Source of the DNA: Bugula neritina
Lineage: Eukaryota; Animalia; Bryozoa
Assembly (NCBI GenBank): GCA_964035545.1
Contig: OZ037765.1
Location: forward strand, 9,248,698-9,312,697
Reading direction: 5' to 3'
Length of the DNA: 64,000 nucleotides
The notes under the pieces are model-generated. The model was not told the origin of the DNA. It did not search any database and was given only the letters and a program-made list of their open reading frames with translations. Shown here one piece after another: positions 16,793 to 45,300 of the stretch. Position 1 is the stretch's first letter. Each line of letters starts with the position of its first letter. The position numbers and the translations under genes are program-made.

Positions 16793-18793
16793 GAAACACT
16801 CCTTGAGAGAGAGAGTTGTCTACTCTAATAAAGCAATAACTGTGCTGACACATATTTCCAAATTTTTGTGTAATTAAAACCGGACATGCATTAATTTGTC
16901 ATATTATATTGGCTTTTCATATATCAAGATATTTTTGGTTTGTCATTATTAGAATTGTCTTTTCTTTGTTTCCACTTTTCATAATGTAATTTTTGATGGC
17001 AATCAGATTTTAAACAAAATTGCTTTGATGTTAGTTTCATACATTTAGCATCTATACAAGATTTTATATATGTAAAACTAACATTAGATGTTTCAATTTC
17101 ATCCTCTTCAAAGATATTACTGATTGCACTCTGTTACTGCGCTATTTATTATACTGTCACTGGTTTTGAATGGAATTTAATAGTAATCATTTTGATATTC
17201 TAGAATTAGCATTTGTATCAGCAATTATGGGAAACTGTTCTGTTTCAGTCATCGTAATTCATATTTTTTGAAATTTGACTATAAGACTATTGATTGTTTA
17301 TAATTTATAGTGTGGCAATTCTTATATTACTTTTTGGTGATTTAAGAAATAAATTATGATTGTTACTTATCACCAACTATATAAGCTCAGTTTTCTACAT
17401 AACTCGAACTAAGTGAGTTGTTGAAATGCAGCATAATTATATATTGGGGTTGAGTTAGCTTAAGTCAGCTTACAATAATAAGAACTTCATTCCTATTGAA
17501 AAAGAAAGCATTTTGAATAACAAAATGTATAAGTTTTGTCTATGGAAGTAGTGGTTAAAGTTAACATTATTGCTTGGCTTGTTGCTCCAAGTTTAAAAGT
17601 TAGATTCAACAGCAATCTTCAAATTTTGGTAATGCTTTGGTTTAGTAGAACGAAATAATGTCCAAGTCTTGCACTATTTGATTGCAGCTCTTATGCAAAA
17701 ATATAAAAGTGAGTTATTGCTATCCTAAAAACAATTGAGATATTAATGTCTGAAGAATTTTTGTGTTTTATAATGGCAAGGATTGTAAAAGCTTCCCGAC
17801 CCACCAGAAATTCAGTCGCAGTCTGCCGACTTGCAAGCTAGCATACTAACCGTTACATTATGGAGGCTACTCGGAAATCATAACACTACAGCTATCCTAA
17901 CTCAATAACATGAATTTGAAAATTTAGTTTAAAAAATTAGCTAGCACGTGTGGTTTTTGAAAACTGCCATTTCTATTATTGCACAAACAGATATATAACT
18001 TGTCCCATTTTTGTTTAACTATTTGAAACTCACTAATTTAGTGTGTTTAATTTGCACAAATAATCTCAATTGACAGCCATTGACAGCTTTTATCAGATTA
18101 GCAATCCCAGAAACCCTGCAAGGCGTAGCAACTCTTTGTCATTACTATACTTTTAAATCACAACATTTTTTAGAATAACATAATATATTATAATTATAGA
18201 GTAATTCAATGCTCAACATTGTTATACATGTATCTTATGCAAATTTATATTAGGCACATATATATGTGAAACAGACATGAGAGGTCAGTCTTTAGGGATA
18301 TTTATATACTGCAAAATACTGTATATATAATCAGATATTGAGAGAAAGATTTGATGAAAATAATTAGAAAGTTATAAATAATACAAAAAGCCACATCTAG
18401 TTGGGTTATTAATCATTTCATGATGCATATATTATTATTATTGGAGAATATTATTGGTGACTTCAATTAGCATCAGCTGGTGTTATTAGTCACAGTTTTA
18501 GACATTAAAAGGATCAAGCTTCCTTTTACTTAATGCAATATTCAAAAAGTGTAAAACTTTTTCAGCTGCAGTTAGCATTACGCAAGTTATGACTCTAGTA
18601 ACATTACAACATCCAGAGTATCAAAGCCTTAGAGTATTAATTTAAGCAACCCATGTTACTAGATACAAAGCTAATATAACTAAGTACAAATAAGATTGAA
18701 AGCTATGACAAATAGAAAAACAATATATATTAGGAGGGAAATGTTACCCATAATATTTAGAGCTGGTGGAGAATAGTTGAAGCAACATAAATA

Positions 18794-19391
18794 ATGGCAG
18801 CAGTTAAATATCTTTTTATGCTGACAGCTTTGTGCTGGTACTGTTGTACCCTAATAGAAGCAGAGTTCACAGAAAGTTGCCTGCTGAAATGTGCTCTCGG
18901 AATTGACAGAAACGATATGCAAAGCTCATGGGAAAAAGAACTTTGCGATGCATTCTGTAGAAATCTGTCTGAAGCTGGTGAGTTTCAATCGAGTTACACG
19001 TTCGAAAGTAATGACTTCTAGAAATACAGACAGCTGTTTGTCAATTGAATTATAGCTCACTAATTGTGCAGTATTAACTTATGTCAACTTTTTAGTAATA
19101 ATAATTACTAGCTCATAATTAATACAGCTTATAAAATTTTCAAAATGAATTTAAAATATGAAATGTATATTTTACATAAACATGTTAACTGACCTGTTAA
19201 TATGAACAATTTATTTGTGTAAATAATGGTAAAATTTATGTGTTTTTTAGTATAGCAACATTTTTCTTACATTTTAAGTAACTATAATCACATTATTATT
19301 TTTAACTACAGTGGAGAAACAACGGGCAAAGTACAAATTGAGATCCGAACAAGGAAAAGACAAGTATCTGCCTTTTGGATTTAAACGTTAA
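18794..19391 (+). CDS. Secreted Cys-rich peptide precursor, paralog A (97 aa; exons 18794-19007, 19312-19391; alternative donor after 18977 gives 87 aa)
   Basis: Signal peptide MAAVKYLFMLTALCWYCCTLIEA; CxxxC-x17-CxxxC; phase-1 intron to EKQRAKYKLRSEQGKDKYLPFGFKR*; aataaa at ~19486; paralog at 24795. Confidence 0.8.
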
Positions 19392-19702
19392 TCCCTAATT
19401 TATGCTATGCATTTCTCCATTGAGAACATACATTTATGTACAATTGTCTAATCATTGTAATGTCCAGTATTTTGCTCTTGTGTACAATAAAACTTTAATT
19501 TGTCTGCAAGGAATAATTGAAATCCCAAATCTATAAGCTTAATTTCTTCAAGTTGAGTTTTTAAACCATTTATGACACCAATAAACTTAATTACAGTTTA
19601 CAAGTTAATTTAGTCGGTTATTTGAATGCCAGGAAGAAAATTTGCCACAGATTCAATTTAATAATTCTAAGAGAAAGAATTGAACAGTTTTCAGTTGTGG
19701 TG

Positions 19703-19997: not shown

Positions 19998-20551
19998 GGG
20001 ATAAAGGCTTGATAAACATAATAAATTTATTCATTCAATTTCACTTTGACAATAACCTACTTTTAATTTGGTTGCATTATAATGGATGATAGGAACAGCT
20101 GATAATCTATTTCAAGTGATGCTATTGTGTGGAGCATGTTGCATGCCAGGAATACAAACAGTTTATTATGTGATTTGTATTATGATGCAAGCAAGTGATA
20201 TTATAATGGTAGGAGCGATGACTAAACCAGTCATTGAACAAGATGTAATATCCAGATATTGTGATGAAGTATTAAGTACACAATAAGATCATGATTTAAG
20301 ATAATATAAATAACAATTGTGACTACATGTATATATAACGCTAAAACTATGATTATAGCATATAGCATCATTTACATCTACCAGCAGTGAGGCCCAATAA
20401 ATATAATAACATACTACACTTGTCAAACAGCTTTTACCAGCCTGGCTTGTGTTTACCTCTGTTGGTGGGTTGACTGGTGCACCACTATATGCTTTACTTA
20501 TTTTTTGGTAACTTCAGCTAGTAAGTTGCTTTTTACATCTGTATCAAACAG

Positions 20552-22448
20552 AACCCACCTGCTGCCCCTGATGTACACGATGCAGGTGATGATAGTGAGA
20601 AGGAATTGCCCCCACCACCTCCAGAACTTTCAGCTTTAGATGCTGCTGTTAATGTAGGTCTGCCGGGCTGTCTACTTGGCCTGTGTGTGTTTAAATGCTC
20701 TCTCTCCATATAATGATAATTAGCCAAGTGTGTTGCTGCTTTGATTCAATGCTAACCCACATCCTTGCTCCTGTTTTAACATTTGTTTAGACTTTACCAG
20801 CAATGTTAGAATAGAGAATTATTGTTATATCTGGTTATATGAAGATTAAGTTATAATTCTCTTTTAAATATCTCAGTTACCTATCAGTTACCTATCAGCT
20901 AAAATTCTTCCTTTATAACATTGCTTGGGCCGATGCTTCATTGTTTAGTCAAACTATTAGACTTTTTGTTTTAGATTTCATTCTTTTTATACAGTTTGCT
21001 GTTGATGAATTCTCATGTGTTGAAAATTTAGTTTGTAATCATTATCTTAGTCTGCTAGTGCTGATGACCCCTCTCAATCAAATACTTCTTCCACCCCTGA
21101 GACTGAAGCACCCTAAACTGAAATTAGCGAGGCTGAGCCTGAGGAACCTGTCTCAGCTGAGGCTGCAGAAGAGGCCCCTCCTCCGGCAAAGGTAATATGC
21201 TCTTTGATTGGCTGCTAAATCAATACTTAGTAGGAAAACAAATTATCATGCGTATTTTGCTATTCTAATTGGTAATACAATAGGGTAAAGTTTCCTCAAC
21301 AACTTTTGATGAAGTTTGAGAGAGCTGTAGGTTTAAGACAATTACCAGTGGATAATCCTTCATCTTGTCTATAAAGATATTTTGCCAACAACCAATAGGC
21401 TCTGCCTTTATAAGTGTTTATTTCGTTGCAAATGATTTTAAGTCAAAAGTTTATTAAATTGAATATTTTTGCAGTAGAAGATTGACATATTAGCATGAGC
21501 CCCAAAACCAGTAGATGCTCCTGCAGAGAATGGCATTGCCGACCTTCCCCAACCAACAGTATGTTGTAATTATAACCTGCGGCTACGATGTCATTGAATT
21601 GTCAATCAGAACTGAGTATAAATCTGTAGTGTGAGGTATGAACCAGCAGATACTGGTCAGGTGTCATCCTACTTAGACGGTTCCCACATGGGCGCTTCCC
21701 ACTTAGACGATATTTATAGGTTTTAGTGTGATGTATGTATTTTATGCTATTATTTAGCACATAATAGAAAGCAAAGAAGCCATCAGCAAGCCACTTACAG
21801 TAACAATGCTTTTATAAGAAGCCATCTTGCACAAACCTTAAACTTAAAAGTAAAAGATAGACAAAATATAATGGGAAAGAAATATCAAATATGTTTATTA
21901 AGTAGTATATTAAAAAAGATTTCAGACAAAAATGGCACAATAAAGTTGCAATATAGCAGTATGTGATATGCATAAAATGGATTTGTGCATTTTATTTTGT
22001 TATTCTGAATAAAATAAACTGTAGCTAAATTAGCATTGGGTTAAAGCAAATGGCTGGCTTGGTAGCTTATTTCATGTTTATATAGCAGTAAATGCAACAG
22101 TTACATAATTATGTATATTACTATATATATTGTACTAAAATAAAAAAAATCGTCCGAGTGGAAAACGTTCAAGTGGGAAACGTCCAAGTGGGATGAAACC
22201 ACTGGTCATCTAGTGCATTGTCAGTTAGCTGCTGTTTTCTTATTTACCTTTTTTAAAAAAATTGCAATTGTTGTTAGTTTTATAATCTTGAATCTCTAAA
22301 TTGTGTACAGGAGACCAAGCCAGATGTGGTGCCGAAGATGACTGCTGCTCAGATGAGAGAAGCACTAGCCAAGAATAAGAAACCTGATCCTCGTAAAGAT
22401 AAGTCCATTGCAACTAAAGATAAACTGAAGATGTTCCAAAACCTGTAG
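20552..22448 (+). pseudogene. Partial duplicate of NHERF exons 3-6 (no PDZ exon)
   Basis: Exon 3' has a 9-nt deletion; exon 4' has CAA>TAA at ~21114; exon 5' has lost its acceptor and 5' half; exon 6' (22311-22448) is intact. Confidence 0.85.
21660..22200. mobile_element. Non-autonomous TIR element (541 bp, GG termini, 8-bp TSD; superfamily uncertain, Merlin/MULE-like)
   Basis: TIR ggtgtcatcctacttagacg vs reverse complement ggtttcatcccacttggacg; tandem subterminal cccactt(a/g)gacg units; TSD actggtca at 21652-21659 and 22201-22208; empty site at ~16317. Confidence 0.88.
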
Positions 22449-23059
22449 GAAACACTCCTTGAGAGAGAGAGTTGTCTACTCTGATAAAGCAATAACTGTG
22501 CTGACACATATTTCTAAATTTGTGTGTGATTACATTATTTTGTCATATTATATTGGCTTTTCATATATATCAAGATATTTCTTGGTTTGTCATTATTAGA
22601 ATTGTCTTTTCTTTGTTTCCATTTTCATAATGTAATTTTTGATGCAATCAGATTTTAAACAAAATTGCTTTGATGTTAGTTTCATACATTTAGCATCTAT
22701 ACAAAATTTTATATATGTAAAACTAACATTAGATGTTTCAACTTTATTCTCTTCAAAGATATTACTGATTGCACTCTGTTACTGCGCTATTTATTATACG
22801 GTCACTGGTTTTGAATGGAATTTAAAAGTAATCATTTTGATATTCTAGAATTAGCATTTGTATCGGCAATTATGGGAAACTGTTCTGTTTCAATCATCGT
22901 AATTCATATTTTTTCGGCTATAAGACTATTGATTGTTTATAATTTATAGTGTGACAATTCTTATATTACTTTATGGTGATTTAAGAAATAAATTATGATT
23001 TTTACTTATCACCAACTATATAAGCTCAGTTTTCTAAATGCATATTTCGATATAACTCG

Positions 23060-23705
23060 GACTATAAGACACCGAGACCCCTTTTCCCCATTCCTACCAT
23101 AAAAAGAATTGTATCCAGAAATAAACATAATGACAGCCTGCTGCTACTATGAACACTAAGTCAAGTCCCAAGACCTCTCGGAGAGAGTAGTTGTTGGACC
23201 CTCAGATCTATCCAGGCTCAGAAATCCACTACTATCTCCCCCCCCCGTACAGAGCTCCTGGACAGTGCGCAACAGGAAACCCTGCAGGTACAGGCTCCAA
23301 TCGCAGGCGATAGCATTGAAGATGTTAATACGGGTATTCATGTTATGGGTTGAGGATTTCATAGATTTAAGTGTGTTATTTAAGATTGGAAATAAATCAT
23401 CATTAGCAGTAATACAACACAACAAAGAAATTCTCTGTGACTGTCTGCCCTTTCTTAATGTTTCTAGGCCTAGGTCAAATTTGGCATCTGTTACCGATAC
23501 TTCTCTATCTTTTAAATTTTTAATGAACCGCACAGCCCTATTTTGAGTAACTTCTAATTTTGTTATTAGATGTTTATTGCACGGGTCCCATACTTAGCAG
23601 CATATTCCAAGAAAGGTCTACAAAAAGTTTTATATGCAAGAATTTTAACATTTTCTGAGGCATTTCCTAGTGTGAGCTTGATTAAACCTAATACTCTGTA
23701 TGCCA
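23060..23705 (-). mobile_element. 3' fragment of a non-LTR retrotransposon (CR1/L2/Jockey-group-like), degenerate
   Basis: Minus-strand translation contains YKTFCRPFLEYAAK.WDP and LEVTQNRAVRFI, typical of post-RT LINE ORF2; frameshifted; absent from duplicate unit A. Confidence 0.75.
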
Positions 23706-24794
23706 GATATTTATGTTTAGAAAATTTTTGCCCCTGACAGCCGAATCCAATAGCAGTCCTCAGACTAGCAATCTAGCATAGGCCTACTAACCATATAGCA
23801 ACACCACAGCTATGCTAACTCAATAACATGAATTTGAAACTTTAACCTTGAAAAGGTTAGCTGACGCATGTGGTTTTCAAACTGCCATTTCTAATATTGT
23901 GCATGTCCCATTTTTGTTCAACGGTTTAAAGAGAAATTAATCTGTCAGCCATTGATTTAGTGTATTTTACATAAATAAATTCAATTAACAGTCATTGACA
24001 GCTTCTACCAGATTCGCAATCTTAACTACCTTGCAAGAAAGCAGCATAATATATAAAATATATTATATAGAATATTATTTATTAGAATTATTAATCAATT
24101 TAATGCAGTAATTAATCAAAATTGTAATATCTTATACAATTTTATATTTTGCATGTTTAACTGAATTTGCTAACTTTACCAACTTATCGTAACGTACAGA
24201 AGAAGTATATTTAATAGTTGCTAGACTGGTTGCTTAAAACAAATGCAAAAGGTCAGGCTTTAGAGCTATTTATATATCTACTATAAAATACTATACATAA
24301 TATTATTAAATTATGTGAAAGATTTGCTGAGAATAATTGGAAAGTTATAAATAACACAAGTGCAATATCAGAAGCCACATCTAGTTGGGTTATTAATTAT
24401 TCCATTATGCATATATTATTAGTATTGGAGAATATTATTGGTATCTTCAATTAGCAGCAGCAGCTGGTGTTATTGGTCACAGTTGTAGACAGTAAAAGGA
24501 TCAAGCTTCCTTTTACTTAATGTAATATTCAGAAAATGTAAAGCCTTTTCAGCTGTTTGCATTACAGATGCTATCGATTCTAGTAACATTACGACATCCA
24601 GAGTATCAAAGCCTTAGAGTATTCATTTAAGAAACTCATATTACTTAATACAAAGTTACTATCGCTAAGTATGAATAAGATTAAAGGCTATGGCAAATAA
24701 AGAAACAATTAATGTACTTACCATATATATTTAGGTGAGAAATACTACCAATGACATTTAGAGCTGGTGGAGAATAGTTGAAGCAACATAAATA

Positions 24795-25552
24795 ATGGCA
24801 GCAGTTAAATACCTTTTTATGCTGACAGTTTTGTGCTGGTACTGTTGTACTCTAATAGAAGCAGGGGTCATAGAAAGTTGTCTGAGTAAATGTGTAGCAG
24901 AAGTTGACGAAAAAGACGTGCAAAGCTCATGGGCAAAAATATTGTGCAATGCTAGGTGCGGAAATCTGTATCCAGAAAGTGGCTTTCAACCAAGTTACAC
25001 ATTCCAAGGTAATGATTTCAGAAATACAGACAGCTGTTTGACAATTAAATACTCAACTAATTGTATAGTTTCAACTTATGTGACCTTCCTTTCAGATATT
25101 TTAGTCTAATTGTAGCTCATAATTAATACAGCTTATGAATTTATTAAATTTTTAAAATAAAGCCTAGTAAAAATTTAAAGGTATATTTTATATACAAATT
25201 TCAACTGATTTATTATCTATGAACAGTTTATTTGTGCAAACAATATAATATGATTAAATTTATGTGTTTTCTATTAAGAGCAGTTATCTTTTATTTTTTA
25301 ATTAATTATAACCACATTGCTTTAAATTATAGATTCTAAGCATAGACTTTTAAAATAAATCTTATATTTAATTACAAGCCCTACATTATTTATACTGTAG
25401 ATTCAGATGCAGCAGCAAGCAGTGGTCCAATTGACAAAAGAAAATGGACTTGGGTCTGGGATGACAGCGAAACCAAGAAGGAGAAACAAGCCTGGGAAGA
25501 TTACAAAAAGAGATACGTTGATGGAAAAAACAAGTTTCTGCATTTTGGATAA
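24795..25552 (+). CDS. Secreted Cys-rich / amidated peptide precursor, paralog B (121 aa; exons 24795-25008, 25401-25552)
   Basis: Signal peptide; CxxxC-x17-CxxxC; donor CAAG|gtaatg, acceptor ctgtag|; exon 2 DSDAAASSGPID-KR-KWTWVWDDSET-KK-EKQAWEDY-KKR-YVDGKNKFLHFG*; aataaa at ~25645. Confidence 0.85.
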
Positions 25553-27785
25553 ACATTAATATGCTATGCATTCCTCCATTGAAAACATACATTTGTGTAC
25601 AACAGTCTAATTATTGTAATGTCTAGTATTTTGCTCTTGTTTACAATAAAACTTTAATTTATCTGCAAAAAATAATTGAAGTCTCAAATCTAACTTTGTT
25701 CAAGTTGAGATTTTAAACCATTTATGACAAAAAATAAGCTTAATTACAGTTTCCTAGTTTATTTAGTCTGTTATTTGAATACCAGAAAGAAAATTAGCCA
25801 CAGATTCAATCTCAGTTTATGCAGTTTATAGTTATGGTGATTAATTCAATATAATTTGTATTATAAAGACAAAATGAAGAAAATATCATTCAACAAGTTG
25901 ATAGTTTTATATAATTAAAATTTTACAGTCTGCTATAGATAAAAACAATAAATTAAAATGCAACGTAATGTATAATACAATTATTAATGTGTACCACGTT
26001 TCCAATGGGGCACTTTTAACAGATGAAAAGATGTGTAGAAATGTTTCTGGCTTTTGTTCTTTTGAATCTGCAAGATTTTAAATGTTTTTTTAAGATACAT
26101 AGTGTGATTTTTAATAGTTAAAGAACAAGTAATAATTACTGCTTTGAATGTGTTTATTATTGGAATAGGATATGTTGTCTCAAACTGCATAAATACATTT
26201 ATTAGGCATGGAAATTTAAGTGACTAACATGCTGACAGAAATTTGTGTAGTCAAAACGTTTGCAAGAAATAAGTTTTCTTACAGAAATAAGTTTTCGAAA
26301 TAAGTTTATACACAGCATTAATAAACAGGTAGCTATTGACCTCATGTAGATAAATTCCTGTTGTTTAAACTCTTAACAGTATAACTGGCTGATGGTTAAT
26401 TATTAATTCAAACAGATTAAATGAAAACTCATTGGGACTGACAATGACTGTCTGCAGCCACTCTTTCAAAATACTAAAGAGTACAAAATGTATATTTGAT
26501 TCATATACGAAAAAGTTTGTATGCAATATATGAAAAGATGTTAATAGCTAAAACCGATGTTTTGTTTAAATGCTTTATTGCATCAATAAGTTTAATGAGA
26601 AAGTAGATAATATAGGTTGTCATTCAAAATATGGTAATGATGCGCTAATAGTGGAGCTAGTGGATGCCCAGGTCCAAAATGGTCAGCAACTTCTCAGTCA
26701 ACTAACATCTCTCCGTCAAGAAGGCTACAGTGTACACCGCCCTGAATGCTCTGAAATTAGATTGATTTTTGAGATCAGGTTTTAGCCTATTCCATAGTGC
26801 AGACTTCTGGTAACATATACTTGATCTGCTAATGAGAGATGTCCTTTTTGCTAAAGACTCCTTCGGGTGCTAATTAATCAAAAAGCTATTGATGAATAAT
26901 ACCATTATTCAAATTATTGTAATAATCAATTTTGCATTTCAACTAAATGACAGCATCACGAACTAATGAAAATGACACGTTAAGACAATACACACATGGT
27001 GTTTTCTTATAAATGTATTCATAATTAATGTTTAGCCACATTAATATTGCACTGCATTTTCGTGTCAGCTTCTTTTGGCCTAAAAGCTCCTGGCAACATT
27101 AAAACTTAAAGTTAACTTTTCTATCAAATGGGGTACATTCCTGATACAGGCTGAATCTGCCACAATAAAATGAAATATAGTTTTTTATATCTAAAGATTT
27201 ACTAAGAAAAACTTTTCTTAGATTTTTAAAGGAAACTTATTATTTTTAGCTTGTAACTTGTGCAAGAAAACAGTTCTGATAACTACGTTGTATAGCAACA
27301 CTACACTATACCTACACTTTAAAACTCCACCCATACTCGGTAGATATTATATAAGTTCTTATTCAATTCACACTATAATGGTGAGCATAGTATGGCGAAG
27401 AAGCAAATACTGGCAAAAATGAAAAAACATGTCAATATTAAAAATTAAACGAAGATGACAAAAACAAATGATTCATAGGTGTAACATTTTGAATCATCTA
27501 ACTAAATGCTGCAGATAAATTACCCCAAGCAATATGTTTCCCTGAAAATGTCAACCTGATCATATTAACCTCATCAGATAAAAAATAACAGAATCAGAGA
27601 GCTATAATCTTAGACGCTTGAAACTAAGGATTGTGTGACAGTTTGTATTAACATCATATACTGGTGTTTGTTTACCACATCAGCCTGAATGAAAATAATA
27701 TAGAAAAACAAATATCACCAGCAAATTAAGTCAAAACTCATTACTAAGTCATTTGTTGACAAGCTTGCTTTTGTAATTGGTAACT

Positions 27786-27854: not shown

Positions 27855-29881
27855 GAGCATATCAGCTATGCTGAAGCTGTTTCCCATCCCAATTATTATT
27901 ATCTATTGGATGAGTAAAATAAAACACTATCAACTGCTCTAAGTGAGAACCAAATCTTAGCGTGTTGCAGTTTAGCTCAAAAAGTTTGGTTGACTTAATT
28001 CAGTTTGGAGTTCGTACATATATATGTATATATAACACATGCAAATACAAATATGCATATACAGTATAATATATATATAATACATTAATATATGCATATA
28101 ATACATGCATATAATACATGCATATAATACATACATGTATAACACGTGTGTGTGTGATCACTTCGGTCTCATGCATCAAATGAAAAATCCACTAGCATAT
28201 TACAAAGCATAGGGACGTAGTGAAAGTGAAATATAATGCTTGCAGAAGTTATTTTTAATTTGCAAGTTGTTGATATGGAAGGTATTGCTAGCTAGCTAGA
28301 ATACTATAATAATATGAGGATGGCACTTCTATAAATTCCAATTGCTCATTTTTAAGTAAAAAGCCTACTTTGATATCATTTATCAACCAGCCTATGTGCA
28401 GAGAAATTTGTAGGAATTGATATAACCTTAAAGTACTAATATTTTATTTGAACAATTTCATCAAACTAGAAAATAAGATTATATCAAGATAATAAAATAT
28501 CAACAAAATTAAGAAGCTATGCCTAGTCACAATTGGCAGGTCATTAGCTGACTTGCTAAGCCTCCTCGTGCAAGGCAGTCTTTAATAAGTCTACCAACAG
28601 AATATTTATGTTCAGCTGAACACAAGAGAAAGGCAAGCTACAGTAAGTTATAGTCCTTTGACTGTATTAATAACTGCCACCAGCTTACTAAGACATTATT
28701 AGACTAATGAAAAGTAAGAGATGCATAGATAAACACATTATTAATATTTGTCAACATGAAGCCTGATTATTGATAAATATTTCATCACTGCTGCTGCTGC
28801 TGAAAATGAAACTTCAGGAAAATACTTGATGCACTTGGCTAAAGCATTTAATTACATTGAAGTGTGTAAAGCTGAATTTCAATTTGAAATGTAAATAATA
28901 GAGCTTTCCCAGCAAATACTTTGCATATTGTAATGTAAATTATGAATTGTGAATCATGAAGACAATTGCGTAATGAGCTACTCTTATAATATAATATGTG
29001 GAATATATAGAATATTAAGCAATGGTTGCCTGTATACGTGCGAAATGGCCTTTTATTTCAGAGCAGGACCCAAGTTTACAAGTTTTCATATCACGAAAAA
29101 AAATTGCATAGTGCTAATCAATATTTTACAGCAGATAGCAATTTAGGTGCAACACTTTTCCATCATGATACGTTATTACTGCAAAGGTATCATGTGATTA
29201 AGTTCAACCATGCATTGTGATTTAATGATTGTAAACTGAGATGTAAACCTGCCAGCAGTATGCATGTGCAAGGCTTATAGGCTATGATTTTGTGGTAACA
29301 TTCAAAAGCTCAATATGTGCTTGAATTATCTAAAATTCTTTAATAGAATGGAATAAATAAATAAAATAAAAACAAAAACAAGGAGTAAATAAATGTTTTT
29401 TCACACAAATACAATAAAAACATATATATTATATATATTGCCAAATGGTAAATATATTTTTTAATTTTTCAACACATTCTTTGGACTGACAGCTTGCTGC
29501 TGCAAGAGAAATAATATAATATATCATATCATAATCTATAATGAAATTCATGTCATATGTATAATATATGACTTGCTAGATAAGAAAAAGAGTCATATTG
29601 AACTACATTTATTGACAAAATGCTGCCTCATAAATAATATATTTAGCTCATTAGATTATATACTTTATTACTACTGCACTCGGACAAACTTTAATTTAAT
29701 CAAAAATAATGAATAAAAACCATCATAGTTTGGGTAAATACAAGCATTGAAATAATGTTTTAAAATTTATAAAACTCTTCTAGGTGATTGGCATGCACCA
29801 ACATTACAAGCAATTTATTAATGTTTATTCTGTAAATATTGAAGAGAAAGAAATGTGTTTATGTTAGCCAGTTTGTTGCAA

Positions 29882-32800
29882 TCAGCAGGGCAGACCTGTT
29901 CGTTCAATACACAGCTTGTCTGCCAACCCCCTGTGAACAGAACATAACAAATTACATTAAAATATAAAACATATAACATTAAATGGAGCACTTATATGAA
30001 AACAAGCATATATATTCTATGACAGTGTTGAGATGTAAGTAAAAACAGACAAGAACTACTGTTATAATGAACAGACACAAAGCTTCATTTAAATACTAAA
30101 AATCAATACATTGTATTTAGAGTCTAGCAAACAAATTCAAATAACTTCAAAGCAATAATAACTGTTCATTTACAGTATTTGCAGGAGTAATTAAACAAGA
30201 AGAAATTGCTTACACCACAAAATTGTTTACTTCAAATGTTTCAGAGTGGGTGTAATTTATGTACTTACACAGTTTCCTTGTGTTGCTGCTGGTTTTCAAT
30301 GATGTATTTTAATAAGAATCTTATAACAGCGTTTTCATCCCTTTGATTCTGTTCATCTCTACAAGCATAATCGATGCAACAGTAACTACATGTTATTTGT
30401 TCAAACGCATGTAATATGTTGTCACTCGAAGCCATGATTAATTTTCAGTTGAATTTATAAATGTTTTGAAAAAGTTTAATTAAAATGAAAATGAAATTTA
30501 CTTTTGTAAACGAAATCAGGAGAAACGTTGCTTTTATCTTTACTCATAGGTAGCAATTGAACTAGGAAATAAGGAAGCTACTTCAGCCACCGTCTTTCAG
30601 AATTATAAATTTAGTTGGAGGAACCTAATTATTTACAATGGTTACTTGTATAAAGAAAAGATAACTCTATAAGTAAGCTTTTAATGGTCTCAAAACCGAA
30701 ATAGATTTACAACGAAGCCAGCTATGAAATAATGAGAAATCAAACTAATAATGCGATTAATTAATGTTATAAAGATAGAAAATATAGTTAACATAATTAG
30801 TCTAAAGTATTTATTGTAAAGTACTTATTGCAAAAAACTAGGGAAACAATAAATTTTGATGAATATCTTCGAGTCATCTACAGAGTGTCAGTGTAAATTG
30901 TTATTTTTATATCAGATCATTTAAAATAGAAAAGACAACTTTACAAATAAACTGCAGGGTTCTACCAATATAATTAGTACTTCTTTAAATGATCTTGCAT
31001 TTAGAAATATGTTTTTTATTCAATAAGAATTATGAACAGTTTATATTTTTTAGAAGATTTTAGCAAATCTTCTAAAGGAATATACCTTATCTTGGACCAT
31101 TGACGCGAGCCTCTACTTGCTCCATCATACAATGGGGGTCTCATAGCAGATGAAGGCTCATCACTAGCTTCGCTGAATTCCCGCTTGTTTCCAAACCAAT
31201 CTGAATATCCTGAAAATAATAAATTAGAGTTAAACTTAAAAGCTGTAATGCAACATACTATATGTCATGTGTAATACACACAACTAACTCAAGCAAGTGT
31301 GATAAATTGCCATCATTAACCATGACTTTGTAAAATCATATGGTAACTGGGTTATAGGTTTTTTGTTTTGTAAGATTCAAACATTTGCACTGTTTATTTT
31401 AATACGCTGCTATTATTTCAAAGCCAAACAATCACAAGAAGCGCATTTCTAAAAAATAATTATAACACTTTGGTTTTTCAACAATTCTCATGTCCACTAA
31501 GGGTGCTTTCGGATTTTGTTAAAATAATAATGAACTATTTTTTTGGAAATTATTATGAATGTCTTACAATATTTTAAGCACACTAATAAAATGCAAACTA
31601 AAAGATTTTTTAAAACTTAATAAAAATATAGTTATTAGTGGAAAACAGATATTTAATGTCTGCTCAGACTGTATTCACACTGTGTAGGTATTATTTAATT
31701 TGTGGAGAAAGTGACAAATAATTGAATTTCTCTGTTATATTATTACCATTTAAATTATTCAATTATGGAGTTAACAAAGAGTATGCTATATTAAATTATT
31801 ATATAAATATTACTAAAAGCGCTGTCAATTGTAGTGCATTGAGTGTGAGCTTATAAGATATTTTATTGCAAATAGACAAAATATCTTATAAGCATCTGGA
31901 CATTTCAATTTTGAGTTGACGTTAAAAAAGGTATTATTTTGACTTTCATAATATCTGAAACATTACACTAACTAGAATACCTTGCATATACTCACCGTTT
32001 ATATGTGCAGTCTGAACAAGTGCGCAGTCATTCATAGTATTCATAATGCAGTTTTTCTTGCTGTAAACAAAAGAAATGATTCAATGAAACTATATAGTTG
32101 TCTTTTCTTGACTATTAACCTAATTTTGAAAAATATATCTATAAAATTTTATAAAATAATTTTCAATGATGACTATTTTTCTTAGATACATAAAACATTT
32201 TTTCAAATCACACACCTAACTATGGAGTGCCAAAGGGTCAAAAATTTGCTTATTATTGCATCTCATAGGCTTATAATAAAGTGTCTGAGCATACGAGAAA
32301 GAATAATGGCTAGATACTTTATTGTAAGCATATGAGATGCAATAATAAGCAAATTTTTGACCATTTGAAACTCCATATGATGGCATCAATTTTAACTGGT
32401 TTAATAAAAACTCAGATTTAATACTTTACTATCATTAGTCAAAATTTGAAATTGCTCAATGTTTATTTAAAGAAATAAAATTTATAGGAGTTGTAATTCA
32501 TTGAACAAAATAGCTAATACTTGCATAAACTTTATTTAAACTAAAACGACAAAATAAAAATATTGCTAGTTAGATTTGACATAAAATTAATGTATATGTA
32601 CTTCCATCTAAGATAAAAAATATCAAATATTTTATCTTCGAATTAGGCATATATGTTAATGAAAAGTAAAATATCCAACAGTTCACATGAATAATATAAT
32701 ATACGGTTTATAACTTATGCAATGAATGGGAGATAGACAACTCCTAAAACGTTTTTATTTGGGTTGTTCTGAATATTATTATGCTTACAAATGATCAACT

Positions 32801-33781
32801 ATAATACAAAAACAAATAAATAGTACCTACCTCAGTGCTTTGATAGGTGTTGGAGGCTTGCCTGTTATAGGCCGGGTGAAACTGTTATCGCCAGGTTTTT
32901 CCTTCTCTTTCATCATAAATTTCAAATCATTCAATAACTGTTGTAAATCATCTTTGCTAAAAAATTTAATGCAGGTGAAAATTTATAAATGATTAATATA
33001 TCTATTAGCAAATTGAAATTGTGAGGTATAAATTATTCAATATTATTAACAGACAATGGGATGTCAAAAACGTTGAGCTATGTGTTTAAAAATAAAATTC
33101 AAATTATCAACCAATGGCAAGCAAACAAACCATGGAACCCATAGTCAAAGTACTACTTTAAATGAAATGCAATGATGCTGCTTCATGATATGTCTAGGGA
33201 ATAAATAGTTATTGTAATGTAATAACTTTAGCTAATTACATGCAGTAAAAAATTCTAGTGTTTTAATTTATTTGCTATTGATCCTAGATAGTACCCACTT
33301 TTCAGTACATTATAACAATAACTGCATAATAAAACCACAATTGTAAATTATATATTGATTAAAGCAGCAACATTAAAACCATTGGTGTCTATTCAAGCGA
33401 CTTGCTAATCATATATCCATAGAATTGTTGAAAGACTGAACCCTTTGTATCTTAAAGTACAAATCTCTCATCATTCTGTTTATAAAAACTTATAAAAAAT
33501 AAATGAACCCAATAAATAAAAAAAATACATTTAATCAAAATATACAGACAGACAAAAAGATTTGCAGGTCATTCAATATAAAAGCATAATTTCAGCTTAA
33601 TATTATGATTAAAATTTTTGGGTAAAACTTTGCTTAGTGTGGTTAGTGTGAATTTAATATTAAAAGGCAAAAAAGTTGATTGTTCCTACCTTTTTGCATC
33701 ATTTCTTCCATTCTCAATAACTGCTGTTATACACACGCCAACACATGCGCAGAAGAAAATAACTGCAGAGTATTTCTTCAT
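29882..33781 (-). CDS. Calcitonin-like neuropeptide precursor, 181 aa; exons 33781-33690, 32956-32831, 32060-31996, 31209-31086, 30358-30269, 29930-29882
   Basis: Six phase-compatible GT-AG exons (546 nt): signal MKKYSAVIFFCACVGVCITA, pro-region, KK-NCIMNTMNDCALVQTAHINGYSDWFGN-KR, acidic spacer, C-terminal GLADKLCIERTGLPC*. The gene model is well supported; the family call is weaker. Confidence 0.75.
32221..32377. mobile_element. MITE-like foldback (~70-bp imperfect arms) in an intron of the neuropeptide gene
   Basis: tatggagtgccaaagggtcaaaaatttgcttattattgcatctcata... / ...tatgagatgcaataataagcaaatttttgaccatttgaaactccata; TA at both ends. Confidence 0.8.
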
Positions 33782-34549
33782 CTCTTATGCGTTTCTACAA
33801 GAATTGAGTTAGCTTAAAGACCTGTATCATGACTACTAGCACCATTAGCCAAGTCTAACCCATTATTAAGTGTACTGTGTATTGTTACAAACAGATAATA
33901 GTTGATGAATTACTGATAACAGCTGAACACCTGGCATAGTAATTTTTGAACTACACTGATAATACTTGTCAAATCTAAAACTAACAACCAATATCTATAT
34001 GCCTATGATTTTATTGTAATAGAACTGGTTATTGGAATTTATATATTTCAAAATATGCAAATCCAATTATTGAGCTAGAAGTTTTGTTCACTTAATATTA
34101 TTTACAATATTTATATATTTTTTAAGAAATTTAGTAAAAAAAATTTGATCACCAAACCTGTTTTTTATTTGAGCTGTATTAAGAGTCTTGAAGTTTACAA
34201 ACATGTGTGTTTTAGAAGTAAATTCGCCAATTATTAAATATTGAAAATAAACTCCTGTAAGCTCATAATTGACTATCTATTATTACATTATTAGACCATT
34301 TTTAATATAGGATACATACATTTATTGGTAAATATATAATTTATATATTTATTGGTTAGAGAATCAACACAAGACGTGATTTGTAACTATATAACTTTGC
34401 AGACAATAAATAGGTCTACAAATATAAAGTATTTTAGCTCAACAGAACCACTATCTTACGTACGTAGATAATATTTTTATTTTTCCTTATTAATTGACAT
34501 ACATATGTATAATTCATATACAACAGGTAGACAAGAATATAAATCTTAC

Positions 34550-34770
34550 AGAGTGAAATATTTTCCAGGGCTGTAACAAGCTGCAATAGTACAGCTGATT
34601 ATTGCAAAGCAGTATAAACTTAAACTGTAAGGTTACATACATTGCAATAAATGATACAAATTTTCCTTACCTGAAACTTGCAAATAAAAGATTAAGTTGA
34701 AAGTGAAAAAAGTTGACAGAAAATAAAGCTGTCCTTTCTCTTGGTGCGTGGAGGTTGGAATGAGTGAGTT
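34550..34770 (-). other. Possible 5' non-coding exons of the calcitonin-like gene (~34770-34671 and 34624-34550)
   Basis: Minus-strand donors CAG|gtaagg (34670) and TCT|gtaaga (34549), acceptor cttacag (34625); the ATG exon has an acceptor at 33795. The implied 46-nt intron is short. Confidence 0.4.
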
Positions 34771-37700: not shown

Positions 37701-40700
37701 TCCTTACGCCATTTACAGTTTGAATTCTTTAAGTGCTAGGTTATGGTTAGCTCATAGCAAATATGGAACTCAGGCTTATTATTAAATAAGCAAAGGATAA
37801 GGCTAGATGACTCATATCCAGCCACAACTCGGTAATCCATATGTTGGTCTGTAGATGAGGAATCAAATCAAATTTAAAATTAATTGAAAAAGAAAGTAAA
37901 GTAAATTGGGTCTTAATTGACCAAAAGTATATCTTGCGACAAGGCAAAACACTCTTAGCTAGTACATATATTTGGAAAAGCATATACAAGTGAAAAAATG
38001 CAAGAAAGTTTAAAAAGTATAATAAAGCTTGTCCATTTATCTTGTTTTCATTTCAAGACTTTTCAAAGAAGAGAAGGGAAAACTGTTTTTCCCTCATACA
38101 GATATTGACGTGATGTATAATTCCTAATATCAAGAGATCTAATCAAAAACATAAGTGGTTCATATCACCTAATCTTTTATTACAATCAATTGTAAACAAC
38201 AAAGACAAGACAGACAAAGACAACAAGAATAGTATTAACTAGGTATTTGTGACAAATATAGGCTAATTTTTAAAAAAAAAATGTAACGAAAACATATGGC
38301 GCATATTTATTGCCCATAAAGCAGCAAAATGTCAAGCCCATAGAACTAAATGGGCAGAGAAAAGTTTTTATGCTAAGTTTTTGTTGTGTTGTAAATAGCA
38401 AATTTCAAAAAGCAAATTTATTCTCACAAGTTTTATTATTGTGTAACAATTCTTTTAACTAGATGAGGCCATGAGGGTATAAAAAATGCATATTAGGCTA
38501 AGTTTTGCGCTTTTATCGTTTTTGTATGGGGGATTTACGGAGTGGCATTCTTTTGTGAAAAGATATGGTTTATTTTTTGTCATAGTAAGATTCTCTAATA
38601 TTTATAATTGATAGACAATAATTTTCACTAAAATAACCTGTATAATTACTTTACAACCATATCGGTATACTTTTGTAAGCATGCTTGAATCATAGCATGA
38701 AAGAAAGATTTTTATTACCTATAGCGATCAATTGTTTTTCGAAATATAGAAGGTATTGAAGTCTCAAAACTTGTGTCAAGAGTGTGAAAGTTGGATGGAG
38801 TGGATTTTGCTAGAATCTAGATGGTCTTTTTAACAGATATAACATTCCTGAATTCTGACTGAGTGATTAGTTGTATGACTTAGATATAAAAGAAGCTGTA
38901 AATTTCATAACCCTGTCGCCCACTCATACTCTGCATTGTGTATGCAAATCCTGCTATTATTCTAGTGTTATACGTCACCAAAACAAGATCAAAGCTGTTT
39001 AATATTGTGAAGTTATTCTAGTGTTTGTTTTAAATTACTTAAATGCACTTCCTATACTCATCAGAAGCATGAGCAAGTCAAAGTGTGGCAGTAACATGAC
39101 AAGCAGGTGCTCTATGAGTTTACATAATTGTAGTCTTGAGTGGTGTTAGTCAAGTTACGGAACAACAAATAGTAGTACCATAGTACACCAATGAAGTATC
39201 GCGCTGATTCTTAGACCCAGTTCACTATACTCTAGCCCGGAACTGACTTGCCTCAATCAGCACGTGCTTCAGCATCTACTTTGAAGCAGAATAATCCACC
39301 AGCCACCCACGCAGATAGGCTCGAGGGCCATTATTGCAAAATGTTTTACTTTAATAAAAATTATTGTTATGTTTAATAAAACTGTATGTTTCAACCATAG
39401 TTGAAAATATTCAAATATGTCATTATAACGCAGATATAAATACTCTTTTGATCAACAAAATTATCATCCATCAACAAATAACCAGAAAATTTTATATTAG
39501 GCTGATGATAATTACAAATAAATGATTTTTTCATATTTTTCCCCTAAATATTTGAAAAAAAAAACTAATTTTAGCCTACAACTTGGGCTATTAATTCCTA
39601 TATATTTATTTCATTAGCAGAAAACTTTAGTGCAAAGTGCAATCTAAAAACTCAGTTTATTATTATTCTGGGTATTATAACAAAACACCTTTCAGATTTG
39701 TCCATATTTCAGAAAAAATAGCAATATTATTTGTGTTAGTGTAATGCTCATATTCATTCTTCTAAGCAATTTGCCACTAACCCAGTGTGATTAGCATAAA
39801 TACCAATATATTGAAATGAAAATTTCCATGGAAAAACTTGCGCATATCAATATATCTAAGCTGAGCCAACTTTTATTTTTCAAATAGAAGTGTTGATAGC
39901 ATGTACTAACTGACCCCCAAAACAATTCAAAATTGTTATCAGCACTTGTAGCTCCTACATACGATTTCATGTATTTGCAAGTGGATTCCAACGTAATTTT
40001 GATTAGATATCAGTTCATAGCAACCATCAACATCACCGAACAGATATGACAAGTTACAGTGCTTTACATTACAAGGACTTAGATAAAGAAGAACCATAGT
40101 TTGTGACGTTGGTCTAACCACAGCAAGACTGTCGGTTCCCTCAATGAACTTTATCTAACATCCGCAAACAGAAGTTTTATAACCCACTCATGTTGTTTGC
40201 AAACAATGATGGATTGCTTCATATGAACACTTTGGCACTAAATTATTGGAAACTCGATAGGGAATAAACATTCAAATACAGAAATTTTCAGCACTAAATG
40301 TTGAATTTTTAAACTAGATACTACATGTGGCGTTGGTGGAGCAATAAACACTACCCTAAAACTAACTGCACTACCTTAAAACTAACTGAGATAAAACAGT
40401 TATCTTCTATTAACTTATATGAGTGTCTACAGTCTACAGTATAAGCTTATAGGAATTGAAATTAAACTTAGTGGTGATTTTAATCAATAAAATGTTCAAA
40501 TCAAAGCTCAATACTAGTGTAGCAGTGTGTTATTAAAACTGTGAAATTAAGTGGGAATGACCTGCAATGACTAATTTTCCTATATTGAATGTAAATATGA
40601 GAATATATTATAGCAAGTGCTTTATTCTAGTTTTGGACCAACAGCTTCTAAGAGTCGTATACTAGTGGTTTGACTGCCAGTGCTATATCACAATACTTTG

Positions 40701-40849
40701 TAAAAGTCATAACTCAAGAGCTCACTATCACTCTATCAGAGTGAATTACTTAAGAGAATTAAATGTATCTTGGTCAGCGAGCGCAGACATAATTCCTTTC
40801 TAAGTTTCATTTAAGAACAATAGATTCTAGATTTAACGAGCATGTAATG

Positions 40850-41620
40850 ATTTGTTTCCTGATACGGAGAGATTAGAAAGAAGGTTAGAGATCTAGAGAG
40901 AGAAAATAGAGGCAGCGGGATTGAAGATAAGCCGAAAGAAAACAGAGCATTTGCCATCAGTTGGAGACCAAGAAAACATCAGGATGAAGAAGTATGGTAG
41001 TCAGGTTATAGAAAGCCTGACTAAGTGTTCCCAATTCAAGTACTTGGGCACAACAATCTGCCAAGCTGGAGGCTGAAGAGAGGCTGAGCTGAGAATATCC
41101 TGGCTTGGAATAAGTAGAGAGAGCTGTCTGGTGTGCTCTGTGACAAGAAAATGCCTACAAATTTGAAAGTGCTGATTTATAAAATAGCTATCAGACCAGC
41201 CCTGCTATATGGAAATGAGACATGGCCCATCACAAGATCTCTGGCTGATAAGATGTCATCATGTGAGATTTGCATATTGCGATATTTTTTGAATGTCAGT
41301 TTAGAGGATCATAAGCCAAATAAGGAAATAACAGCTGAGGCCGATTAAAGACCTAGTGAGGAACAGACGAATGCAGTGGTATGGACATGTTAGACGGAGA
41401 AAAAGTGAGGATGACATCCGGATAGTGTCAGATATGACAGTTGAAGGAGTTCGACCTAGGGGTAGACCAAAGCAAAGATGGTGTGACACAATAAACTCAG
41501 ACCTTAGATAGCTTGATCTAGATGGTGCAGATGCTGAAGATCAAGTGCGATGGAGAAGTCTGGTAGAACTTGGTATCAAGCAAAGACCTGCCACCCGCGC
41601 AGGACCACGGCAGTGAAAGG
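40850..41620 (+). mobile_element. 5'-truncated, decayed RTE-clade LINE
   Basis: GLKISRKKTE, FKYLG, AWNK.RELSGVLCDKKMP..LK..IYK..IRPALLYG.ETW, WYGHV.RR, RPRGRPK.RW motifs, with stops and frameshifts. Confidence 0.9.
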
Positions 41621-41654
41621 TAAACAAAGGTAGACATGATTAAATCAACGATTT

Positions 41655-41860
41655 TAGCTAAAAATGGCACAGGTAATATGGTGCAAATGGAAAGTGGATA
41701 TAATGGCACACTGATGCTAAACTTAGACCCCCAAACCCAAATCCCCAATATTCAGAATGTGCCATTTTTATCTACTTTTTCATTTGTGCCATAATTACTT
41801 GTGCCATTATTATCGTGGCATTTTTACCTGTCCTATTTTTACCTGTGCCATTTTTACTGA
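41655..41860. mobile_element. Foldback-like MITE remnant with repeated aaaatggcac / gtgccatttt units
   Basis: Left units aaaaatggcacaggtaa mirrored by tandem ttttacctgtgccatttt units on the right. Confidence 0.55.
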
Positions 41861-42326
41861 AATAAGCTACATTTGTGAAAAAAGAACCTAACAATTTAGT
41901 GCTTAAAGTTGCCCATTGAAATTTTTTTACAAACTTATCAAAACTTTAAGTTTTTATAACTACTTAATTTTATTTTCAATAAACATTATACACAGCTTCT
42001 CAAAGAACAGTTTTTCAAATATTGAAACAATAACCATGTATTAAATGCAGCTGACTTATAAAAACTAAGTTACATTGATATGTACACATCAGTAAACTAT
42101 TCCGGCAAATATTTACATAGACAGACAACAAATATTTGAAGGTGTAAAAATTTAGTTCCAAGTTCACACCTGGTAAACTACACGGTATTTACACTAGCAG
42201 GCTTTAAATTTACAACTTCCAGTAACAATACATAGCAGAACAATAGACTTATTTCAATGTTTTGCAAACATTACTAAACTCTTCTTACACACAATAGTGG
42301 TTTTGTGCGAGTATTTAACTCAAGAG

Positions 42327-45300
42327 TTAAATAATATTACTTTGGTTTTTAAGAAACTTGTGGAGTTGCCCTCCCAAATCTTCATCTTGATAAGACCATG
42401 ACAGCAACACTCCGATATTTGCCTCATCAACTTTGCTAACTTGTATCAACACCGACTCAGATATGCTGATAGATCCATCCTGATTGTGAAGAACTCCCTT
42501 CAATCACACATGCAGACACTGATGCAATGCTGAGCTCACAAGTTTTACATTTGGGAATAACTCTCCTGATAGACATCTGTGTACGTAGTTAGTGTTTGCA
42601 TAATTTCCGACCACGCATTCAGTAAATATACTTCAAGTAATTGAGATAAAAGAATTACATACCTTTGAATTCACAACATTAATATGCGAATTAATTGATT
42701 ATTTTAGAAATGTTAATGGAAAAGTGGAGGCTTTACCTTACACTTGGCTCTTGTCTTTAAAGCTGAAACTATTTTCTCAGTGACCTGCTGGGCAGGTAAA
42801 GCGATTGATAGGACAAAGTTAGATGTGAACCGAATGGTTTGAGAGGGCAACTCCAACTCTGCCAGAGTTTCTTCTGTAGATAATAGTCTGAGGTCTGAGT
42901 CATCCATAACCAAGACTCCATTGACTAGTGTGGATCTTTTAGGGGCGGGTTCTACACTGCCACCTACAAAAGCAAACTATTTGTACTCAAAGAATAAAAC
43001 AATTTCTTCTAGAGAACTGCAGCTGTATGAATGTATTTTTACACAAGCACAAATCTACATAGAGCTTCAACTGTTTCCACATAAATACTCCATTCAAAAC
43101 TGTCACTAGTACTAGGTGCTGCATTATATTAACAATATTTAGAGGTGAACAGAAAAAAACTGCACTACAGAAAATGGTAACTTATAAAAAACACAATTAC
43201 TATAATAAACGCTAGAACAAAAGCAGAACTTGAATTGAACATTAACTTGAAAGTACAGTGCTCCTTCCATATCTCACTATGCTGCATGTTCCAAAATCTC
43301 AATCTGTGACAAAGTAGAATACCAGATTTAACTAACTGATCCGTTAAATTCGGCCATTTTGTCCCTATACAGTATACACACATATATAAGTCACAAAATG
43401 AGAGTCCAAGCCCTTCTCGTGACCTGTGGAAATGAATCCGTGAGACATGGAGAGAGCACTGTACACAAAGTATTTCCTTATAAATCACTAGCTAATTTTT
43501 AATATGAATCACTAGCTAAGTTTTAATATGAATTACTGGCTAAGTTTTAATTTACGAGAACGAGTACAGTAAAAAGTTGTTAGATATGAATACACATGCT
43601 ACAATATGACAGCACATACCATGATCCGTAAATGATCTCTTTAACAACTTGAGAGAAATATCGACAGGTATTTTACACGTGGTTTCTATGGTAACAGTCT
43701 CTCCATTAGCTGGCATATAACACTCTATCCCAAATTCATTGCGAATTTTCTTTTTCAGAAACACCATCTTGCCTTCTTCCCCGTGCACAAGCATGACGTT
43801 CTTAGGTGCAGATTGCCGTATCAATTGTATAATACCTGAGCCATTATAAAGATACAATGTGTTTAGAAATTGAAAGCTTTAAAAATGCTGATAAATTAAT
43901 AAGCATATAACATTTATTGTTCCTAAAGTTTTCTAAGATAGAAATTTAATTACAGAACAAATTGTATACACTAATCAAATGATAATACTAATAAGAGTAC
44001 TATAATTAACATTAATAATATACAAGGCTTATATTAGTGTCAGTTACATTATCGTCTACTTATATTAAAGTAAAGCTTAGACTCTGGAATGTATGTCACA
44101 GGATTGACTACGTAATATATCATACAGTGTGACTAGTAATATATCATACAGTGTGACTAGTAATATATCATACAGTGTGACTAGTAATATATCATACAGT
44201 GTAACTGCGTAACATATCATACAGTGTGACTAGTAATACATCATACAGTGTGACTAGTAATATATCATACAGTGTAACTGCGTAACATATCATACAGTGT
44301 GACTAGTAATATATCATACAGTGTGACTAGTAATATATCATACAGTGTGACTAGTAATATATCATACAGTGTGACTAGTAATATATCATACAATAGGTAG
44401 ACTATACAGTTTAAATATGTAATATATTACACATATTGATTGTGTAACTTACTTCACTTACCTTTAGCATCTGCATGAGCACTGAAAGACATGTATTGCA
44501 CTTTCATCCTCACGTCAACCGTATGACCATCAAAGTCGATCTTTTTCACTCCGTTGAGAATTTTGTGACCCACAGTTCCTTGCACACAATAGCCGGGCAT
44601 AATGACCATGTTCTTGTCACTGGTGCACCATCTTTTGAATATTTGCAGAGAAAGACCAGCGTGCAGCATGCCAGGTGTAGCAAATACAACCATAGCCCCC
44701 GGGTTGTCCATATACGCCTTGTCAAAGGCTTTAATATGTTTGAAATCAAACATATTTCTGTGTACAAAGGTTTTCTTGATCTTCTGATTAGTCCATGAGA
44801 TGAAAAGTTTGTAATAGTGATTAGCTTTCTCCGCCAACCCTTGTGTGAAATATACAGGTACTTTCAAGTTCAGTCTGTCCCAGAATGTCTCCAGTAGGAT
44901 ACACAACTCCTGTGCTCTCCCCAACGCAAATACCGGAATCAAAACCTAAACTCAAGGATGAAAATAAAACCTTCTATAAATGATCCAAAAACTGGGTTGC
45001 AAGAGACTCAATAAGCTCCAAAACACGGTTTTTAAAGTCTTACAGCTGTATGAGCCATGAGGTATAATCTAATTTGATAGCTGAGTGTGTGCTTCAATAA
45101 TTAAAATAATACATCAAAAACTTAAAGATTACTTGAATATAGAAAATTTCTACTGCATTTCATAGTAATCTATAGCACAGAGAGCATGTATATATGTTTA
45201 GATCACGTAATACTAACTGATAAGTGTGGTAAAAATACTTAGAAAACCTCAAACTTCATTTAATTATAGGAAAACTTGTTGAAGGAGGGCAGATTAAAAT

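Follow-up and report, generated by a model that had tools for sequence, protein, structure and literature searches.

We found in the window, that is, the whole analysed stretch of 64,000 nucleotides of Bugula neritina DNA (contig OZ037765.1), a calcitonin-like gene that is expressed, conserved and unannotated, and whose descent from calcitonin is very probable from motif register and architecture, not from an E-value. Its precursor has no amidatable unit, which is new, as phoronid precursors keep amidated copies according to the sequences drawn on from PMC8557429; our literature search found no report of a bryozoan calcitonin. The reading that we favour, and hold to be reasonably likely, is that the gene descends, in bryozoans, from the two-peptide calcitonin gene of lophotrochozoans and is probably its only ortholog there, with both units shortened at the C-terminus and with a product that would act as an agonist.

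The window is AT-rich animal DNA within an assembly of 216 Mb. The gene has six coding exons on the minus strand (Table 1), none of which (0/6) appears in the list of open reading frames, and all five introns are of the GT–AG type, with phases 2, 2, 1, 2 and 2. The joined coding sequence of 546 nt encodes 181 amino acids and a stop codon. A 1024-nt Logan contig from run SRR4020085 encodes the complete 181-residue B. neritina ortholog (P0004); it maps onto the six exons with the introns removed and confirms the five junctions and the stop after Cys181, although rare isoforms are possible beside this one contig. A GT donor and an AG acceptor also flank every junction in the B. neritina reference assembly. 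A sequence-only reading of the window had proposed a hidden six-exon gene outside the open reading frame track, and such a gene is indeed present, with GT–AG introns and transcript support for every junction. In GenBank, the B. neritina model is broken up between two contigs and appears as two hypothetical proteins. When exon 4 was searched among 1.84 billion proteins, one true relative was returned, a B. neritina hypothetical protein, and the remaining half of the gene (KAF6038791.1) and the full-length P0004 fall into its cluster.

Table 1. Features of the calcitonin-like gene (positions in the window) and class B1 receptor loci of the surrounding genome.
Feature	Position	Strand	Basis or remark
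Non-coding exon 1, 3' end (5' extent beyond)	34671–34688	minus	18/18 match to transcript 5' end; GTAAGG donor follows
Coding exon 1: short 5' UTR, ATG at 33781 (coding part 33781–33690), signal peptide residues 1–20 (33781–33722), start of pro-region	33690–33796	minus	transcript; hydropathy 2.3–3.0, h-region
Coding exon 2: first amphipathic pro-helix (residues 33–45), Pro/Thr-rich linker; phase-2 intron in codon preceding KK	32831–32956	minus	transcript
Coding exon 3: KK site (32059–32054), first 18 residues of peptide 1, ring Cys77-x7-Cys85 (32050–32024)	31996–32060	minus	transcript
Coding exon 4: end of peptide 1 (Trp99, 31198–31196), KR (31186–31181) without preceding Pro-Gly, acidic spacer	31086–31209	minus	transcript
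Coding exon 5: second amphipathic pro-helix (residues 145–157), like the helix ahead of the second calcitonin in other lophotrochozoans	30269–30358	minus	transcript; by-eye comparison
Exon 6, coding part: single Lys171, second ring Cys173-x7-Cys181 (29911–29885), stop directly after Cys181	29882–29930	minus	transcript
3' UTR, reaching at least 29442	29442–29881	minus	transcript matches 29930–29442 at 91%
PTH-like class B1 receptors (two)	C5:14.86 Mb; C4:22.72 Mb		PF02793/PF00002 scans
unc-4/PDF-like class B1 receptor	C4:6.84 Mb		likeness to brachiopod receptors taken for the unc-4/PDF-like group
CRF-like class B1 receptor	C1:10.22 Mb		PF02793/PF00002 scans
Calcitonin-type receptor candidate	C3:32335090–32347109		B. 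neritina ortholog P0007, 571 aa, KAF6036260.1, annotated hypothetical

Conservation was measured between the two close Bugula genomes. Comparison of the window coding sequence with the B. neritina ortholog yielded a dN of 0.033 against a dS of 0.213. Residues 74–104 differ by a single amino-acid change, whereas about 14 would be expected under neutrality, and the last 15 codons carry four synonymous and no non-synonymous changes; the ortholog evolves under purifying selection. Because dS reaches 0.213 and introns are 85–89% identical, we infer that the window genome is closely related to the B. neritina reference but stems from another lineage. Gene order is kept in B. neritina and runs from INTS11 (beta-CASP; upstream, window positions ~39100–45800, minus strand) over the calcitonin-like gene to a secreted gene and a PDZ gene. 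The immediate neighbours are INTS11 and a PDZ gene; calcitonin synteny markers from the literature are PIK3C2A, TRAF6, FAR1, CPSF7 and SMTNL1 (PMC7200681), and bryozoan genomes show strong rearrangement of gene order (PMC11789643). A tandem duplication of ~6 kb (13064–19657 and 20004–25810, 78–94% identical), arranged tail-to-tail with the calcitonin-like gene, comprises the tail of the PDZ gene and the secreted protein gene. In its duplicate first exons at 18794 and 24795, the signal peptide is conserved and the Cys-rich region has diverged; the second copy ends F-L-H-F-G at 25535.

The precursor shows the proposed layout of signal, pro-region and KK-peptide-KR, with a hydrophobic N-terminus at residues 6–18. 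Peptide 1 spans 27 residues (76–102) between KK (74–75) and KR (103–104), has a putative Cys77-x7-Cys85 ring, is split by a phase-1 intron and stops with Trp-Phe-Gly-Asn at +17 from the second Cys, without Pro-Gly. The W-F-G-N-KR end is common to both Bugula genomes; the Cys ring, this terminus and the missing amide donor, all read earlier from the letters, recur in both genomes and in the transcript. The further peptides claimed downstream fared less well: more sequence does follow KR, but it starts with an acidic spacer and continues into another helical pro-segment and a ring ending at the stop, and the mature part has no dibasic site beyond the two named. Unit 2 is preceded by a single Lys instead, and its C-x7-C ring has Gly at ring position 5, as do second-unit rings of relatives. 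In both Bugula genomes, the introns of this gene are free of a Pro-Gly-Lys/Arg cassette. A hidden Pro-Gly exon was rejected for this reason and because the transcript confirms the W-F-G-N-KR end of the peptide; neither the introns nor the spliced contig hold an extra exon that restores a PG-K/R end. We also considered an open frame that overlaps exon 6 and extends beyond its stop (29929–29821, minus strand, alternative frame, 37 codons, both species) as a relic of the lost tail. It carries Tyr-Leu 14–15 codons after a Cys, several offsets are possible, its interspecies changes are not selective, and it is not distinguishable from chance. A single-sequence AlphaFold model was uninformative (pLDDT 36).

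To place the precursor, we set it by eye, and hence without an E-value, beside the calcitonin precursors published for lophotrochozoans (PMC8557429, supplement 2; PMC7200681, supplement). These precursors consist of tandem units: in each, an amphipathic pro-helix is followed by a dibasic site and by a Cys ring with x6 to x10 spacing, and the tail closes with Pro-Gly, +19 to +22 counted from the second Cys. Both tandem units recur in Bugula (helices 33–45 and 145–157, rings 77–85 and 173–181), the second being cut short, and the exon 5 helix closely resembles the one ahead of the second calcitonin in nemerteans. Peptide 1 is flanked by dibasic sites and carries a putative N-terminal ring, whose x7 spacing falls within the published range. 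An aromatic residue at +14 with a hydrophobic one at +15 was found by eye in 33 of 35 published lophotrochozoan calcitonin peptides, and Trp99 (+14) and Phe100 (+15) fit this register. In 200,000 shuffles, the chance of the register given the ring was 0.010, and that of dibasic site, ring and register together was 3.6e-4; stricter patterns gave 6e-5 and 2e-5 (2e-5 for second helix and ring), figures to be discounted as these patterns were picked post hoc. Furthermore, a phase-2 intron lies in the codon before KK, and the same site would apply to Phoronis and Novocrania, judging only from protein isoform pairs that differ by His or Gln just ahead of KR.

These features have to be weighed against a bryozoan-specific neuropeptide family unrelated to calcitonin, in which generic precursor features such as amphipathic helices and Cys loops would have converged. 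Searches of Pfam, PDB (peptide), ESM Atlas, homologs and metagenomes revealed no calcitonin match, with homologs confined to B. neritina; ESM Atlas indicated generic neuropeptide-precursor likeness only, and PF00214 matched neither the precursor nor the genome, its control also matching nowhere. The absence of a database link would suit a separate family, as would the by-eye comparison with some patterns chosen after the sequence had been seen; the ring also lacks the Gly-rich content of most relatives. Against it, independent features agree in order and register, including the two units, the +14/+15 pair, residues shared with Tubulanus and the phase-2 intron. We consider convergence quite improbable, and the new family suggested in the sequence-only reading was set aside, as the precursor follows the two-peptide calcitonin precursors of lophotrochozoans colinearly over its entire length. 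Descent from calcitonin appears likely because tandem helix–ring units, register, shared tail residues and intron position agree in order. Peptide 1 is then likely a calcitonin cut off after +17, and unit 2 one cut off after its ring. Since the canonical Pro followed by Gly-Lys/Arg is absent and the length is 27 instead of 31–33 residues (range from PMC7200681), the gene is best filed as a calcitonin-derived variant and not as a canonical member.

Whether a canonical calcitonin exists elsewhere decides the standing of this gene. Searches of the genome with its exons and with full-length P0004 revealed a single copy. Patterns for the second-unit ring, the in-register ring-to-tail arrangement and the L-N-S-x-x-S-P-G tail returned nothing convincing, no open hit of the ring-to-tail pattern resembled calcitonin, and a DH31 N-terminal pattern gave chance-level matches only. 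All these patterns presuppose constant spacing in an uninterrupted peptide, so that intron-split or differently spaced peptides are missed. With a tail-only pattern, 38 hits were obtained compared with 14 for the control; some eight of the 38 are open and end in Pro-Gly-dibasic. Two of these open stretches (C119:48426–48458 and C1:18222416–18222448) end in Ser-Pro-Gly plus a dibasic site at calcitonin/DH31 tail spacing, which may be chance. That this is the only calcitonin gene of Bugula is therefore somewhat likely but not firm, as the patterns assume no intron while this very gene has one inside its peptide, and as the roughly eight open tail hits may include a second one.

The gene could instead be a side paralog, with a canonical amidated calcitonin or DH31 serving the receptor and this peptide acting as a low-affinity modulator or having moved to another receptor, e.g., the unc-4/PDF-like one. 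Such a division has parallels, in that two calcitonin genes exist in molluscs (PMC7200681), amidated copies occur next to non-amidated ones in Phoronis (sequences in PMC8557429) and echinoderm calcitonins also activate PDF-type receptors (PMC12638048); the open Pro-Gly-dibasic tail hits would be where a second gene might lie. However, exon, full-length, ring, ring-to-tail and DH31 searches yielded no second gene, and both ancestral units are kept, as would be expected of the main locus. We regard this alternative as unlikely. Of the truncated non-amidated calcitonin paralog proposed earlier, descent from calcitonin and the lost Pro-amide are upheld by register, architecture and transcript, whereas paralogy is not, given a single-copy gene and no canonical calcitonin in searches that were incomplete.

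PF02793 and PF00002 scans of the genome revealed at least five peptide-hormone class B1 loci (Table 1), with no clear DH31-type or PDF receptor among the loci scanned. The best solved-structure match of P0007 was CLR (E 2e-36), and its N-terminus shows extra-Cys and helix motifs as in the Lottia/Capitella 'Calc_DH31' group, distinct from the DH31 receptor type. By elimination, the C3 locus is likely the single, divergent calcitonin-type receptor of the L-DCc2/cluster A kind; oyster L-DCc2 receptors respond to oyster calcitonins at the nanomolar level (PMC8557429). Co-evolution of the receptor pocket was rejected as unproven. P0007 lacks the equivalents of CLR Gly71 and Trp121, but other Bugula class B1 receptors are without that Trp as well, so that the loss of amide-pocket residues is not specific; wherever the relevant exon of these receptors was seen, the W-x-N-Y motif of the ectodomain has lost its conserved Trp.

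For the favoured descendant of the two-peptide gene, we propose the following mechanism. The signal peptide would be removed after about Ala20, a prohormone convertase would cut at KK and KR, and a carboxypeptidase would trim the ends, resulting in a 27-residue peptide with a Cys77–Cys85 disulfide and a helix. Amidation needs a terminal Gly, and because the C-terminus offers no Gly donor, the peptide would remain non-amidated, with a free Asn (calculated monoisotopic mass 3029.26 with the disulfide). The 27-mer would be an agonist of the C3 receptor, ring and helix activating it and the conserved Trp-Phe pair providing the docking for which other calcitonins also need the Pro-amide turn; we give agonism at this particular receptor an even chance. 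Unit 2 would either be cleaved off at the single Lys, as a short C-terminal decapeptide ring of 1101.53 Da, or stay on the C-terminal pro-peptide. By analogy with bivalves (PMC7200681), the likely role would be in ion balance or calcification.

An endogenous antagonist of a calcitonin-type receptor had also been suggested, and the peptide is indeed truncated and non-amidated compared with its family. In class B receptors, docking falls to the C-terminus and activation to the N-terminal ring (PMC4504005). Vertebrate CGRP and adrenomedullin receptors depend on the C-terminal amide for binding (PMC4504005), which counts against our favoured reading. Known antagonists lose the N-terminus and keep an amidated C-terminus (PMC4504005); the Bugula pattern is the reverse, and no agonist to oppose was found, which makes antagonism very unlikely. 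Since the ring is kept and the C-terminal tail is lost, an agonist with altered docking is the better fit. Least probable of all, and scarcely credible, is that the peptide serves a different class B receptor family (iPTH/QSGamide) or resembles NdWFamide, although the genome encodes two PTH-type receptors and the peptide ends in Trp-Phe-Gly-Asn. By-eye comparison with Phoronis precursors revealed neither a D-x-R-L-A-[DE] start nor a Gly-KR amide donor. The NdWFamide motif is Asn-Trp-Phe-Gly-Lys-Arg, while Bugula has Asp-Trp-Phe-Gly-Asn-Lys-Arg; as Asn parts Gly from KR, standard processing would yield no Trp-Phe-amide.

The proline amide is one of two hallmarks of calcitonins across animals, and the amide contact is key in vertebrate receptors. 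A natural pair of peptide and receptor working without the amide would, if true, test the need for that contact. It would also help to settle which lophotrochozoan receptor group belongs to calcitonin and which to DH31, a question left open in PMC8557429. Motif searches requiring Pro-Gly would score Bryozoa as having lost the hormone. A more far-reaching reading, which we hold tentatively and think doubtful as a whole, is that Bugula has no amidated calcitonin or DH31, that its calcitonin system consists of a 27-residue free-acid peptide and one receptor with a changed docking pocket, and that the phoronid loss may share its origin.

Phoronids are among the closest known parallels. In supplement 2 of PMC8557429, the sequences of Phoronis ijimai, P. 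australis and P. psammophila comprise two units, as in Bugula, and unit 1 has a ring, Leu+2, Gln+4, Asp+13 and Trp+14 and no Pro-Gly before the basic site; P. psammophila also shares Ser-Asp-Trp with the Bugula tail, in register and without gaps. Unlike in Bugula, the ring of phoronid unit 1 is C-x9-C and Gly-rich, its tail reaches +22, and Pro-amide peptides are still encoded by unit 2 and by an alternative exon, whereas neither Bugula unit is amidatable. Non-amidated calcitonin-like copies (Phoronis unit 1 and short Cys loop isoforms in Lineus, Cerebratulus and Tubulanus) appear in this supplement without comment in the material drawn on. The closest tail is that of a nemertean: the first peptide of Tubulanus shares Leu+2, Gln+4, Asp+13, Trp+14, Gly+16 and Asn+17 with Bugula, D-W-L-G-N aligning gaplessly with D-W-F-G-N, and second-unit rings of Tubulanus and Lineus are C-x7-C and start with Asn-Cys, like Bugula ring 1 (sequences from PMC8557429). 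Both full nemertean peptides, in contrast, end in Ser-Pro-Gly, and where a short Cys loop without Pro-Gly is spliced in, the second peptide is complete (same source). Ring sizes thus differ between Bugula and phoronids and the closest tail is an amidated one; the two losses may nonetheless share an origin.

Among the sequences covered in these sources, colinear two-peptide precursors occur in phoronids, brachiopods, nemerteans and molluscs, and KK before the ring is common to Bugula, Novocrania, mussel and octopus. Mussel CALCI/CALCIa and oyster calcitonins share with Bugula the helix, dibasic site, ring, Cys-Ala-Leu, Trp+14, Asn+17 and two units (sequences in PMC7200681 and PMC8557429), but have 31–33 residues and an amidated proline, and molluscs have two genes (PMC7200681). 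DH31, which belongs to this superfamily and acts on receptors of the same class, has retained its Pro-amide but no longer has the cysteines; the Bugula peptide is the opposite, with two cysteines and no Pro-Gly.
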